From sequence record MN445183.1: 64,000 bases of DNA, one strand, 5' to 3'. The position numbers and the translations under genes are program-made. Below, one piece after another: positions 4,633 to 59,958 of this stretch (positions within the stretch are counted from its first letter, which is position 1; every line of letters begins with the position of its first letter). The notes beneath the pieces were generated by a model. The model searched no databases. It worked only from the letters and a program-made list of their open reading frames with translations, and was not told the origin of the DNA.

Positions 4633-4663
4633 CAGCGGGGATCCACCTCGCTGTTTTTTTTTT
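4633..4663 (+). terminator. intrinsic terminator
   Basis: cagcgggg-atcca-cctcgctg then T10. Confidence 0.75.
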
Positions 4664-5087: not shown

Positions 5088-5154
5088 AAGCACGAGGGTC
5101 TCTTCTCCCGTTGGGGAGAAGAGACACCTCTATGCTGTCTTTTTTTTTTTATGC
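5081..5154. terminator. bidirectional terminator, GCATAA/TTATGC family
   Basis: gagggtctcttctccc-gttg-gggagaagagacacctc between convergent genes; T11 at 5140-5150. Confidence 0.85.
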
Positions 5155-5514: not shown

Positions 5515-5898
5515 TTACCCGCCCGGTTTAGGTTGAGCTGCGTTTAACTTGAGAAAAGTTTTCTCTAATTCCGACAGCCCATCGCCCTTACTTTTTGCTT
5601 TCTTTTCCCCATAACGAATACTGCGTTCTACCATCATCTTTTGTTTGGCGTAGGTATACGTCATCCAGGTGTCAAACGTAATGCCCGTGTGCTCGAAGAT
5701 GTTCGCATTGAGGTATTCATCGAAGTACCCGCCAAACCCACTGAGCAGTAAGGGATCTTCCTGTTCCACTTGACTGGCCAGTGAAAACGGCGACGGATCG
5801 GTATCGTGGTTAACAATACCGTAGGTGTCGTCGTAGAGCTCCAACAACCGCAGCTGCACCAGTTCCGGGTCACCGGCCATGAACTTAGGATCGTTCAA
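5515..5898 (-). CDS. hypothetical protein; candidate -1 frameshift extension of upstream gene
   Basis: frame stays open upstream to 6024, across T7 slippery site; only a TTG or later ATG start. Confidence 0.75.
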   Translation of the reverse strand: MNDPKFMAGDPELVQLRLLELYDDTYGIVNHDTDPSPFSLASQVEQEDPLLLSGFGGYFDEYLNANIFEHTGITFDTWMTYTYAKQKMMVERSIRYGEKKAKSKGDGLSELEKTFLKLNAAQPKPGG

Positions 5899-5954
5899 GG
5901 CCTTCTCCCAGGCTTCACCACGGTCGTAGTAGTCGCTACCGAAATCGTGGTGGA

Positions 5955-7604
5955 TTAGATGTCGGCGCTGTTGATAGAATTCGCTACTGTATTCGTTAAG
6001 AGGGTAAAAAAAGCTCGCTCCAGGTTAACCGGTGTGTACGACGGGAAGTGGTGGTTAACCATCGGTTGACGATGCTGACACGCCGGGCATTTGTAACGAG
6101 GCAGTGCAACAATACCCACCGTTGTTTCCGTGATGAAGCGGTTAACTTCAGCATAGAACTTCTTGCGGATCTCATCGTCTTTGCTGAGCTCTTTCAGCGT
6201 TTCGTAGATTGGTTCTTCGCCTTCTACGAAGCCGTCGATCTCACCGTCTGCATCGAGATAGTCAACGCGACGTACGAAGTGTGCATACTGACGCAGTGCA
6301 GAAATTGCAGCCTGCTTGTTAATGTACTGCGTGCGTTGCTCACGAGAGATGGTGTCTTTAAACGCCAGGGTCAGGGAATCTTCAATGGCGTTGATCCATG
6401 CTTCGCCAGCTTGCAGTTTGTTCTCCACGGACGACATGCCGAAGATAACACGCACACCCGGAGTCAACACCGCTACGTTATCAGCCATCGTAGCAAAGTG
6501 TTCCTGGTATGCCAGCACGGATTCCGTAGTGTGGCCGTTGCGTTTACGGATATGCGCACGCTGGCCTTCGGTCAGACGGGCGTTATCAATAATCGTCATG
6601 CGGCCAATGCTGGTTTTCCGTACTTCGATGTGGTTACACTTCAGCGGATCAACCTGGCAAGGCTGTGCGATGTTGTAGCCCGTGCGGAAGCGCGCGGCCA
6701 TGTAACCAGCAACCAGCAGCGGAATGTCCTGAATCAGAACGATATTACCCAGCTCTTTCTTGTTCGCACTACCCAGTGAGGTATTGACGATCATGCCTGC
6801 CATCAGATCCCACAGGTGACGCAGAATGATGACGTCAGAGTTGGAGAACACCAGACCTGCCGTACGACGACCCAGCACCGATTTGGATTCCAGTACACGC
6901 GTATGGAAGTTAACCATCTCGTCTTCGCCAGCAACCAGCAGGGTAACCCAAATACCGGTGTGTGGAAGTGGTAACGTAATAAAGTCGCCGATCTGCATGA
7001 CCTGACGTGCACGAATCATGGCGTCTTTACCGGACAGGAGTTCGCCTTTCTTGTGCTTAGAGTTTGTTACGTTAGGACGGAATGCGCCTACTACCTGATC
7101 GTCGATCAGAATACCTTGCAACCAACGGCTGTCTTTACGCATCACTACGTCGGTCAGACCGTTCTTATATGCCATGTGGTTGATGGACTGCTGGGTTGCG
7201 TTCAGCCACTGCATGGCTGATTCTGCACCTTTCAGTCGGACCATTTCACGGAACAGCTCAGACTCACTGGAATCGGCTTTGCCCTGGTTAATACCATCAA
7301 CCAGATCGTTGATGGTAATCTGGTCGCCGTGCGCAACGTGCAGCACGTCCATCAGTTCAGGGTACGGCGTCAGGACACGTTCGATTGCCGGATCAACGTA
7401 CTTAGAATCCAGCTCGATATCCGGATCGTTTGGCATGTCCGCCACTTGTTCAGTTACAGATGTGTCGATGGCATCTGGGTCATTGATAATCCCGCCGATC
7501 GGATCCTGGCGACCCATTTCACCAGTCTCACCCAGCTGCTCAACTTTGTTGGTGATGACCTGATCCAGATCGATACTTACTTCGTCATTCTGATCGTTTG
7601 ACAT
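5955..7604 (-). CDS. putative tail/baseplate assembly protein with C-terminal CxxC pairs
   Basis: 549 aa; CQVDPLKC and CPAC motifs as in T4 gp26/gp51-type hub assembly proteins (resemblance only). Confidence 0.55.
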   Translation of the reverse strand: MSNDQNDEVSIDLDQVITNKVEQLGETGEMGRQDPIGGIINDPDAIDTSVTEQVADMPNDPDIELDSKYVDPAIERVLTPYPELMDVLHVAHGDQITINDLVDGINQGKADSSESELFREMVRLKGAESAMQWLNATQQSINHMAYKNGLTDVVMRKDSRWLQGILIDDQVVGAFRPNVTNSKHKKGELLSGKDAMIRARQVMQIGDFITLPLPHTGIWVTLLVAGEDEMVNFHTRVLESKSVLGRRTAGLVFSNSDVIILRHLWDLMAGMIVNTSLGSANKKELGNIVLIQDIPLLVAGYMAARFRTGYNIAQPCQVDPLKCNHIEVRKTSIGRMTIIDNARLTEGQRAHIRKRNGHTTESVLAYQEHFATMADNVAVLTPGVRVIFGMSSVENKLQAGEAWINAIEDSLTLAFKDTISREQRTQYINKQAAISALRQYAHFVRRVDYLDADGEIDGFVEGEEPIYETLKELSKDDEIRKKFYAEVNRFITETTVGIVALPRYKCPACQHRQPMVNHHFPSYTPVNLERAFFTLLTNTVANSINSADI

Positions 7605-8059
7605 TATACATTTCCCTTGGGTTGGTTCTGTGCCGCAACTGCGGCTGCATGAGCCTGTTCGTTAGAGTTAAAGAGCGGTACGAAGCTGTCGTTCCAGACT
7701 TGAATGATCATGCTCTGGATAAGGACATATTCTTCATGGATCGCCAGAAACTGCGTAATCTCATCCGGAGACAATGCATAACCCGTACGACCCATGTGTT
7801 TTGGATGCACAACTGCCAATGCCTGCTCGGCATTTTTAACAGTGGTCAGCAAAGCATTAATGCACGGATCTAAGATAGCCGGGTTAGGATGGAAGTGGAT
7901 GATATTGTTATTTACCGCCATGAGACACGTGTTACGATACTGGTTCACCAGGTCAATCGTATAGTGTCTCACGACGGTATCCAGATACTCCCAGCTGGAG
8001 TCTGAAGGGGTTGGTTGCTCTGGTGGAGCAGCCAGCGGATAAAGTGGTGCTGTTGACAT
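7604..8059 (-). CDS. hypothetical protein
   Basis: 151-aa ORF, AAGGA RBS, stop overlaps next start. Confidence 0.8.
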   Translation of the reverse strand: MSTAPLYPLAAPPEQPTPSDSSWEYLDTVVRHYTIDLVNQYRNTCLMAVNNNIIHFHPNPAILDPCINALLTTVKNAEQALAVVHPKHMGRTGYALSPDEITQFLAIHEEYVLIQSMIIQVWNDSFVPLFNSNEQAHAAAVAAQNQPKGNV

Positions 8060-16244: not shown

Positions 16245-16317
16245 GCATAAAGGAGCCACTGCTTCCCTGCTTGCGCGGGGAGGCAGGGCTCTCTTTTATG
16301 CCGTTCTTTTTTTTTTT
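16245..16317. terminator. bidirectional terminator, GCATAA/TTATGCCG family
   Basis: gagccactgcttccctgc-ttgc-gcggggaggcagggctc, TTATGCCG, T11. Confidence 0.85.
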
Positions 16318-56872: not shown

Positions 56873-56936
56873 GCAGCTACCGCTCCCGACATGGGAAGCG
56901 GTAGCTGCTATTATGCCGATGTTCTTTTTTTTTTTT
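56873..56936. terminator. terminator, TTATGCCG family
   Basis: gcagctaccgctccc-gacat-gggaagcggtagctgc, TTATGCCG, T12. Confidence 0.9.
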
Positions 56937-58343: not shown

Positions 58344-58381
58344 AAAAAAAGAGGGGGCGAGTGACATCGTGTCCGCCCCCT
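58344..58381 (-). terminator. helicase terminator
   Basis: agggggcg..cgccccct stem then T7 on minus strand. Confidence 0.75.
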
Positions 58382-58422: not shown

Positions 58423-59958
58423 TTAACCGAACCACGGGTTCGCGCCACCGTCAGCCACGGTTTCACCAGCAACATGTTTACGAGACATGTCTTTACCGTT
58501 AATGTCATCCAGAATACCGGCCTCAGTAAACTTGTAGACACAGAACTTATCACGCTCAGGTGTAATGGAGATGGTGCGGTGTTTACCACGCTGCACACAC
58601 ATGTACGTTTCTTCACCGACACGCACGAGGTGGATAATGATCTCCACGTCGACTTCTTGGTCAATCTTCGTACAGTTATCCCAGTACCCTTTGTTCGCCG
58701 TTTCACGCGGCAGGTCTTCTTCCATCCCGTTACGCACCAGCATCTTCGCAGCAGGCGACAGCTGGTGAGGTGTGATCAGACAGATGCCACGTGCAGATGT
58801 GAAGTTACGGACACGACGGAACAGGTCACGGTATTCTTGACCCGCCACACCCTTCTCACATCCAGACTTATTGAACATCCCCAGGTAGTCAATGGTTAAC
58901 AGATGAATTTCATAACCCATGTTCTCGAACTGCTTAATGCGTTCGAACAGGTTACGGTAACCAAACTGTGATGGGTCGACACGACAGAAGTTGACTTCAT
59001 AACCCATAACGGATAATGATTCCATCACTTCTTTGGCTGCGGTCTCTTCATCAATTGCCTGATGGTCGTGCACTAAACCATCAACGTTGGCCTTAATCTT
59101 CTTCCACCAAGAAACCATGTTATCCGTCATGTTGTTTTCAGACGAGATGTGCATGATCATTGGTTTCTTCTTCGGATCGCGCATGTACGGTTTATTGTAG
59201 ATCGCAATCTGTCGGGTCAAGTCCATCGTGAACCCAGATTTGTTGTTGTGTTGCAATGCACCAATCAACACAAATTCAGAACGACGGAACCCACCGACTT
59301 CACCCAGCATACGGTTGATACCCTGATACCCGGTACGCAAAACCCCAACCGTTGAAGATTCTTCTTTGGCTTGCTTAAAGATTTGGCTTACCGCATTCAG
59401 GTCACTCACCGATACTTCACTGACAACCGCTGGGTCAAACTGGTCAGTGGTGGTTAAGTTCAGCGTTTCAATCTCTTCCATCAACTTACTGACAGCGACG
59501 TCAACATCAACGTCCTCACCGCCATAGATGATAGGCATGGCTAATTTCTTGATAACCGCTTTGGCTTTACGACGGCTATCCCAGCCTTTCAGGTCACGGT
59601 AAATCTGCGTGACGATCTGGTTGGCACGATACGGGTCATCTTCACTGGAGTTGATACCCATCTCCAGGGCTTGGTAAGTCGACGCATCTTGACCGCAGTC
59701 ATTCAGCAGACGTTGTAACAGGTCAAGTTTGTCTAACGCTTCCAGCTTGTTACGACCGATCAACCAACGAATTGTTTTACGCAACGCCAGCTGTACAGAA
59801 CGTTGCTCATCGCTACCCATTGTCTCAACAGGTGCGGGAATATTCTCCATGAGTTCGTCAACAAACTCACTGTAATCGTCACCGGCTTCACCACCAACAA
59901 CGCTGTGTTGGTAAAATAACGTAATAATCTTTATGATAAGCAGACCAGTGTCCATCAC
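58423..59958 (-). CDS. DnaB-like replicative helicase (phiKZ gp118-like)
   Basis: TGYQGINRMLG, GALQHNNKSG, HISSEN, IDYLGM, TPHQLS, QRGKHR. Confidence 0.92.
   Translation of the reverse strand: MMDTGLLIIKIITLFYQHSVVGGEAGDDYSEFVDELMENIPAPVETMGSDEQRSVQLALRKTIRWLIGRNKLEALDKLDLLQRLLNDCGQDASTYQALEMGINSSEDDPYRANQIVTQIYRDLKGWDSRRKAKAVIKKLAMPIIYGGEDVDVDVAVSKLMEEIETLNLTTTDQFDPAVVSEVSVSDLNAVSQIFKQAKEESSTVGVLRTGYQGINRMLGEVGGFRRSEFVLIGALQHNNKSGFTMDLTRQIAIYNKPYMRDPKKKPMIMHISSENNMTDNMVSWWKKIKANVDGLVHDHQAIDEETAAKEVMESLSVMGYEVNFCRVDPSQFGYRNLFERIKQFENMGYEIHLLTIDYLGMFNKSGCEKGVAGQEYRDLFRRVRNFTSARGICLITPHQLSPAAKMLVRNGMEEDLPRETANKGYWDNCTKIDQEVDVEIIIHLVRVGEETYMCVQRGKHRTISITPERDKFCVYKFTEAGILDDINGKDMSRKHVAGETVADGGANPWFG

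Follow-up and report, generated by a model that had tools for sequence, protein, structure and literature searches.

Two annotated genes and a candidate slip site

Is the gene for a 549-amino-acid (aa) hypothetical protein in a Salmonella jumbo phage complete as annotated, or is it the first part of a longer gene that is read through a programmed -1 frameshift? The question was raised by a 64,000-nucleotide (nt) stretch of sequence record MN445183.1 (the window), whose segment 5400-7700 shows 100% identity with Salmonella phage vB_SalM_SA002 (MN445183.1; hereafter SA002), a 288-kb jumbo phage. Two separate hypothetical proteins are annotated in this segment, both on the minus strand: ACSA002_2800 (549 aa, 5955..7604, matching phrog_4585 with an E-value (E) of 2e-119, and also present in the list of open reading frames (ORFs)) and, downstream of it, ACSA002_2790 (127 aa from a TTG codon, 5515..5898). 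An initial annotation, made from the DNA letters without database searches, had proposed a probable programmed -1 frameshift that would join the next ORF to the 549-aa protein. Comparative sequence evidence strongly supports this proposal, and we put the probability that gene 5955-7604(-) and the next ORF form one recoded gene, which is the best explanation of the locus, at roughly 85%. All of the evidence is computational, and consists of sequence features, their conservation, a dual-coding signature and a fold resemblance.

The zero frame of the minus strand reads GCT TTT TTT ACC around the candidate slip site, placing a T TTT TTT heptamer (6006..6012) in the X XXY YYZ register over the codons for Phe-Phe (residues 532-533). 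After the second TTT there are sixteen sense codons and then TAA at 5957-5955. Past a stop at 6027-6025, the -1 frame stays open from 6024 until the next stop (5517-5515) and runs into the ORF at 5515-5898, which would thus be the C-terminal part of a -1 extension; the complete extension past the heptamer spans 163 codons (5518-6005). Its first 17 codons share a putative dual-coding overlap (5955..6005) with the 16-codon zero-frame tail and stop, and an apparent intergenic gap of 56 nt (5899..5954) follows. No ATG, GTG or TTG occurs in the -1 frame between 6024 and TTG 5898, the first possible start in SA002, which is preceded by GGAG with a 6-nt spacer; the next is ATG 5880. The positions given in the initial annotation were all correct (heptamer 6012-6006, its register, the open -1 frame 6024-5515, the gap 5954-5899 and the GGAG).

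The slip site is conserved among distant relatives

We read a total of 39 loci with protein identities spanning 20-90%. These were SA002, 12 metagenome/IMG/VR relatives (59-92% identity), three IMG/VR contigs (27-32%), Erwinia phage pEa_SNUABM_37, Agricanvirus phages, Proteus phage 10, Pseudomonas phage DT01, SL2 (phiKZ-type), 201phi2-1, PhiPA3, PS119XW, SPN3US, EarlPhillipIV, CR5, RSL2, pVa-21, 2050HW, FBKp24, PCH45, Halocynthia phage JM-2012, Yong XC32, KPN8 and the Bacillus jumbo phage AgentSmith. In 39/39 loci the -1 frame opens at the Phe-Phe codons or shortly before them and stays open to the end of the homologous downstream piece. A -1-frame stop is common 2-4 codons upstream of the heptamer and is never seen on its downstream side, not even in loci with a zero-frame tail of 37-44 codons (2050HW, FBKp24, PCH45). 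T TTT TTN was found in register in 36/39 loci (28 T TTT TTT, 7 T TTT TTC and 1 T TTT TTA). The initial annotation had named loss of the heptamer or stops in the -1 overlap of homologues as grounds for abandoning the frameshift; because homologues keep the heptamer (36/39) and never stop in the overlap (0/39), the proposal stands.

Phe-Phe 532-533 is near-invariant in the family alignments. TTC is preferred in most of these genes and the T run is kept against codon usage; RSL2 and the loci L020 and L029 have no TTT codon elsewhere in the gene. Of 21 deep lineages, 18 have NNT TTT TTN, where 2.09 would be predicted when Phe codon usage and the T content at third positions are taken gene by gene (P 2e-18, a value that assumes independent lineages and is therefore reasonable at 20-40% protein identity but not exact). 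The slip site is conserved beyond the demands of protein sequence and codon usage. A T7 run is by itself unremarkable: the window holds 27 overlapping matches against ~12 expected, about twice the shuffled expectation. One of these, at 58344-58350, follows a G+C-rich hairpin downstream of gene 58423-59958(-) and is not a comparable slip site. The above-chance feature is the conservation of the slip site in relatives, not T7 itself.

The -1 frame evolves as coding sequence from the heptamer onwards

Searched against phrog_13274, the annotated 127-aa ORF scored 90 bits, with a match that starts only at profile position 66 of 182. The full open -1 stretch scored 135 bits and matched back to profile position 26; this position aligns with residue 4 of the stretch, directly at the heptamer, so the match spans the 56-nt gap. 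Similarly, tblastn with the -1 stretch found 21 further phage records, in which the match sets in ~60 nt short of the upstream gene's stop; it overlaps two annotated coding sequences (CDS). In these alignments, amino-acid homology in the -1 frame starts at the heptamer.

Substitution patterns were compared as mean pairwise differences at codon positions 1/2/3 among twelve sequences of the SA002 clade. The upstream gene gave 0.21 / 0.16 / 0.55 and the annotated downstream ORF 0.27 / 0.12 / 0.50. The 'intergenic gap', read in the -1 frame, gave 0.13 / 0.18 / 0.50; since its substitutions fall mainly at the -1-frame third position, the gap evolves as coding sequence. The initial annotation had noted preferred codons in these 56 bp, and both the third-position periodicity and the phrog_13274 match running through the gap agree with a coding role. 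From the heptamer to the zero-frame stop the values were 0.27 / 0.18 / 0.19: all three positions are constrained and synonymous change is suppressed, as expected for dual coding. The translations of both frames are conserved in this overlap. Conservation likewise covers the zero-frame tail with its stop, and the short form is therefore also functional.

The first ATG, GTG or TTG in the -1 frame lies 10-89 codons after the heptamer (median 50), and its position varies between genomes. Because the first possible start shifts from genome to genome, one and the same ORF has received divergent annotated starts. In closely related Erwinia phages it is annotated at 68 to 182 aa (L004 2423-2971, L006 2576-2971, L005 2720-2980, L003 2768-2974 and L002 2678-2995), differences that read as a symptom of a missing start codon. 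In Simmy50 the annotated downstream ORF overlaps the upstream gene by 136 nt. Every GenBank record examined has two CDS and none has a joined CDS.

The two-frame arrangement is the rule in the family

Notes in the 201phi2-1 and PhiPA3 records place the 549-aa protein in a family with phiKZ gp77, 201phi2-1 gp136, PhiPA3 gp074 and EL gp47. The family was found in 227 phage records by tblastn, and a profile search of 1.84 billion representatives returned 1617 members. Among the best 150 of these 1617 representatives, none was a fused single ORF; all of the 150 end a few to ~20 residues past the Phe-Phe profile position, with FF 8-34 residues from the C-terminus in 143 of them. Given the lack of fused forms and the uniform ends, the two-frame arrangement is therefore a family rule and not an error in SA002.

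A proposed mechanism and its alternatives

We propose that most ribosomes stay in the zero frame and would make the 549-aa protein, ending 16 residues past Phe-Phe 532-533. A minority would slip back by one base with two phenylalanine transfer RNAs (tRNA-Phe) on T TTT TTT and read 163 codons of the -1 frame, giving a product of ~696 aa (533 zero-frame residues plus 163; both lengths were obtained by counting) that carries a different, mainly helical C-terminal domain. The extension would give a sub-population of the protein an extra binding surface. A stimulatory hairpin or pseudoknot, or an upstream Shine-Dalgarno-like element, is frequent at -1 sites but not obligatory. As no stimulatory element was found at these loci, slippage of tRNA-Phe that appears to depend on the heptamer by itself is favoured. 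The efficiency is probably low, because neither a stimulatory structure nor a conserved upstream Shine-Dalgarno-like element was found, and a low efficiency would fix the ratio of short to long form. Both the efficiency and the ribosome, rather than RNA polymerase, as the slipping agent are what we infer from these features.

Several results weigh against a programmed frameshift at this site. Folding of the SA002 segment gave no stimulatory RNA better than shuffles (z +0.77). Equally, in 38 loci the mean z of the 45 nt following the site was +0.13 and that of the 80 nt following it -0.72, and the consensus fold of 15 sequences reached -0.3 kcal/mol with no covarying pair. The initial annotation had seen no close stimulatory stem, and single folds, shuffled controls and the consensus fold all bear this out. 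A hairpin ~54 nt downstream of the SA002 site was considered as a stimulator and rejected as unconserved; so was a GGAG just before the SA002 heptamer as a Shine-Dalgarno-like element, the upstream sequence being unconserved in relatives. Three lineages (PhiPA3, PS119XW, pVa-21) have degenerate sites, with T5-T6 runs only and an imperfect first triplet; their runs still permit re-pairing of tRNA-Phe. Finally, GGAG-6 nt-TTG 5898 is a plausible start in SA002, so the downstream piece could partly be made alone.

The alternative that survives best is a transcriptional shift, in which stuttering of the RNA polymerase (the phage's or the host's) at the T run leaves a fraction of the messenger RNAs with the two frames contiguous. 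In its favour, the slip site is homopolymeric (a T7-T8 run in most lineages), and these phages have unusual multisubunit RNA polymerases of their own. The run nevertheless lies always in the exact ribosomal register over two Phe codons, and lineages with T5-T6 runs (PS119XW, pVa-21, PhiPA3, L030, Yong XC32), which are poor substrates for polymerase stuttering, keep the site for tRNA-Phe re-pairing. Conservation of the register may in part reflect the dual-coding constraint. Polymerase stuttering is weakened by these observations and we consider it improbable, although it remains the main rival to ribosomal slippage.

On another reading these are two independent genes: the downstream ORF has no other start of translation than its own (TTG 5898 or ATG 5880 in SA002), and the T run and overlap are incidental. 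This reading draws on the GGAG 6 nt before TTG 5898, on the two separate CDS of the GenBank records and on metagenome gene callers, which also predict a separate short ORF. It fails to account for a -1-frame protein that is conserved from the heptamer, a point 38 codons upstream of where the ORF starts in SA002 and, in relatives, up to 89 codons upstream of any start; nor does it explain why the start-less gap evolves as coding sequence, why start positions are unconserved, or why the T run is held against codon bias. We therefore regard independent genes as very improbable, more so than polymerase stuttering. The initial annotation had left room for independent initiation at TTG 5898, which holds as far as SA002 is concerned (GGAG, 6 nt) and does not extend to relatives, where the start is unconserved; own-start translation could serve some phages as a second route. 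Errors in sequencing or assembly, or decay of a gene whose true form is one long ORF, are suggested by the error-prone nature of homopolymer runs in some sequencing chemistries and are effectively refuted by the distribution data, with the same two-frame layout in 39 independently sequenced genomes and metagenome contigs, a conserved zero-frame tail and stop, and 0 fused forms among the best 150 representatives.

The 549-aa protein resembles T4-type hub assembly proteins in predicted fold

To look for a function, we searched both pieces and the family profiles against Pfam, NCBIfam and PDB, and found nothing usable by sequence; the PHROG families matched are all of 'unknown function'. The AlphaFold2 model of the 549-aa protein (128-sequence alignment) is confident, with a predicted local distance difference test (pLDDT) score of 85 and a predicted template modelling (TM) score, pTM, of 0.82. 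The N-terminus of ~65 residues is disordered in the model, and a C-terminal helix (528-547) holds Phe-Phe and the zero-frame tail. Foldseek with this model against the PDB returned noise only (best E 0.06, TM ~0.08). Against BFVD it returned first the jumbo-phage orthologues and then several ~250-aa T4-like hub assembly proteins, named 'baseplate hub assembly protein, bacteriophage T4-like', 'baseplate hub assembly chaperone' and 'baseplate hub subunit' (E 6e-6 to 1e-3, TM 0.5-0.58 normalised to the target). The model thus predicts a fold common to the 549-aa protein and the T4 gp26-type hub assembly proteins. In T4, gp26 and gp51 are hub assembly chaperones (PMC3004832).

By its fold and by the signature at its gene end (see below), the 549-aa protein would be a greatly enlarged, distant relative of the T4 gp26-type proteins, and these two features together make a role as a non-virion assembly factor for the tail hub likely. 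The 201phi2-1 record offers an indirect indication: gp138 and gp139 are flagged there as found by virion mass spectrometry, and gp136 and gp135 are unflagged.

Other results tell against this assignment. The structural match behind the assembly role is moderate. A comparison by hhalign with three gp26-type sequences was weak (E 7e-4 over 134 columns, probability 27%), and PF12322 gave no match at E<=1 in 12 diverse family members; as a control, gp26 of phage DLP6 matches PF12322 at 3e-55. The model of the -1 extension, mainly helical, is poor (pLDDT 67), and no relatives of the extension were detected outside its own family, the Foldseek matches being its own orthologues. The extension was also considered as a gp51 homologue and rejected: phrog_634 matched at E<=1 in 0/27 extension sequences, and hhalign of the extension against a gp51-type alignment gave a probability of 0.6%.

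Four cysteines of the 549-aa protein (316, 323, 506 and 509, forming C-x6-C and C-x2-C) are near-invariant in 128 family members, which suggests a structural metal site.

The same gene-end signature occurs in T4-type gp26/gp51

We then looked at the gene ends of the gp26-type proteins themselves. The gp26 of DLP6, a Stenotrophomonas phage, was retrieved via the accession in PMC5349666 (L042 15483-16369; PF12322 E 3e-55). It carries Phe-Phe on T TTT TTC one codon before the stop, and a gp51-type ORF (phrog_634) follows in the -1 frame. IMG/VR yielded 80 loci with a gp26 relative (among L043-L124), 56 of them non-duplicate. The heptamer was in register in 56/56 non-duplicate loci (T TTT TTT in 43, T TTT TTC in 10, T TTT TTA in 3), 0-3 sense codons before the stop, and in 56/56 the -1 frame leads straight into conserved gp51-type sequence. 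ATG, GTG or TTG was absent within 12 codons of the heptamer in 39/56 loci. S-PM2 (L125 901-1793) and Pelagibacter phage HTVC008M (L126 901-1790) have the same gp26-gp51 arrangement. The gene order in HTVC008M is tail tube, gp26, gp51, a hypothetical gene and a putative tape measure, which is the classical chaperone position.

A gene-end signature common to the gp26 and jumbo-phage families independently supports both their relatedness and the recoding. On a broader reading, one ancient, family-wide -1 signal links gp26 to gp51 in T4-like phages and operates in their enlarged homologues in phiKZ-like nucleus-forming jumbo phages; gp26/gp51 would then supply these contractile-tail lineages with their long-missing counterpart of lambda G/GT, and 'gp51' would be mainly or only the shifted extension in many cyanophage-type genomes. 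We give this broader reading about even odds. The annotated gp51 of HTVC008M begins 20 codons inside the conserved -1 sequence.

Comparison with known frameshift systems

Fixed-ratio expression has a textbook example in the programmed frameshifts of phage tail chaperone genes. Among long-tailed phages, tail assembly genes with a conserved -1 frameshift were reportedly described by Xu, Hendrix and Duda in 2004. The SA002 locus would share with lambda G/GT a -1 slip on a heptamer late in a morphogenesis gene, close to its 3' end, giving a short and a C-terminally extended product, and in neither is a flanking stimulatory structure evident. In 201phi2-1 the homologues are unflagged as virion proteins, and in the T4-like HTVC008M the gp26-gp51 pair lies between the tail tube gene and the putative tape-measure gene. 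For the -1 frameshift conserved in the tail assembly genes of phages with long tails, PMC8570332 cites Levin et al. 1993.

The differences from lambda are considerable. The first ORF of SA002, at 549 aa, is ~4x the length of its lambda-type counterparts (roughly 100-150 aa), the jumbo protein matches none of the Pfam or NCBIfam chaperone families by sequence, the SA002 gene adjoins a virion RNA polymerase subunit gene and unknowns instead of tube and tape-measure genes, and tRNA-Phe decodes the slippery site, a T run. The initial annotation had spoken of a 'G/GT-like chaperone pair'. This is apt as an analogy of architecture; membership of the G/GT family is not supported by size, sequence or the position in SA002, and the predicted fold is of the gp26 type instead.

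With T4 gp26 (PF12322) and gp51 (phrog_634, 'baseplate hub assembly catalyst') the likeness lies in the predicted fold, with a weak profile match, and in the gene end, which has Phe-Phe on an in-register T run near the stop and is followed in the -1 frame by another conserved ORF. The jumbo protein is twice as long as gp26, with a disordered N-terminus and insertions and no PF12322 match, and its zero-frame tail has 8-44 codons compared with 0-3 in gp26. The jumbo extension is ~150 aa compared with ~60 aa for gp51, and homology between the two is undetectable.

A further -1 frameshift is that of bacterial dnaX, which yields tau and gamma (PMC7412058). Both systems would use a programmed -1 slip on a homopolymer-type heptamer to make two products from a single gene at a set ratio; in dnaX the shift ends translation early and gives a shorter product, whereas in the jumbo phages it would lengthen the protein. 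The dnaX shift is driven by flanking stimulators, and none were found in the jumbo-phage loci.

To our knowledge, a programmed frameshift is undescribed for phiKZ-like jumbo phages and for T4 gp26/gp51. We found no description of this frameshift or of the function of phiKZ gp77, and no proteomic or ribosome-profiling results for the gene, in the open literature (subscription literature lay outside the search), and literature matches for 'gp77' and 'gp136' were unrelated proteins of other phages. Should the frameshift be real, the annotation of a core gene would be corrected in several hundred jumbo-phage genomes, where the downstream ORF is truncated or has an arbitrary start. PhiKZ gp77 and its neighbour would gain a likely role in tail-hub assembly, and the poorly understood hub-assembly factors gp26 and gp51 a concrete handle. 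A bare T-run heptamer maintained over very deep phage divergence would also be useful to frameshift predictors.

Neighbouring genes and further features of the window

In SA002 the 549-aa gene has as neighbours a phiKZ gp78-like gene, a gp79-like gene, the gene for a virion RNA polymerase beta subunit, and unknowns. The gp78-like gene (151 aa, 7604-8059(-), phrog_10945) shares its final base with the first base of the 549-aa gene, and, as the two are syntenic in every relative examined, 7604-8059(-) and 5955-7604(-) may be translationally coupled. On the other side, the gene after the extension ORF varies in metagenome relatives; in L020, 3603-4049 encodes a Macro domain protein, and a gene with an I-TevI-like DNA-binding domain, possibly a homing endonuclease, lies nearby at the 3' ends in L025 and L026. 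In Erwinia phage PhiEaH1 (KF623294.1 / NC_023610.1) a homologue of the 549-aa gene stands at the start of the record, at 18-1343, without an annotated feature.

Long T runs (T10-T12) also occur at ORF ends in the window, among them 1544-1554, 4654-4663, 5140-5150, 16307-16317 and 56925-56936. These runs, and the hairpin with T7 at 58344-58350, look like intrinsic terminators.

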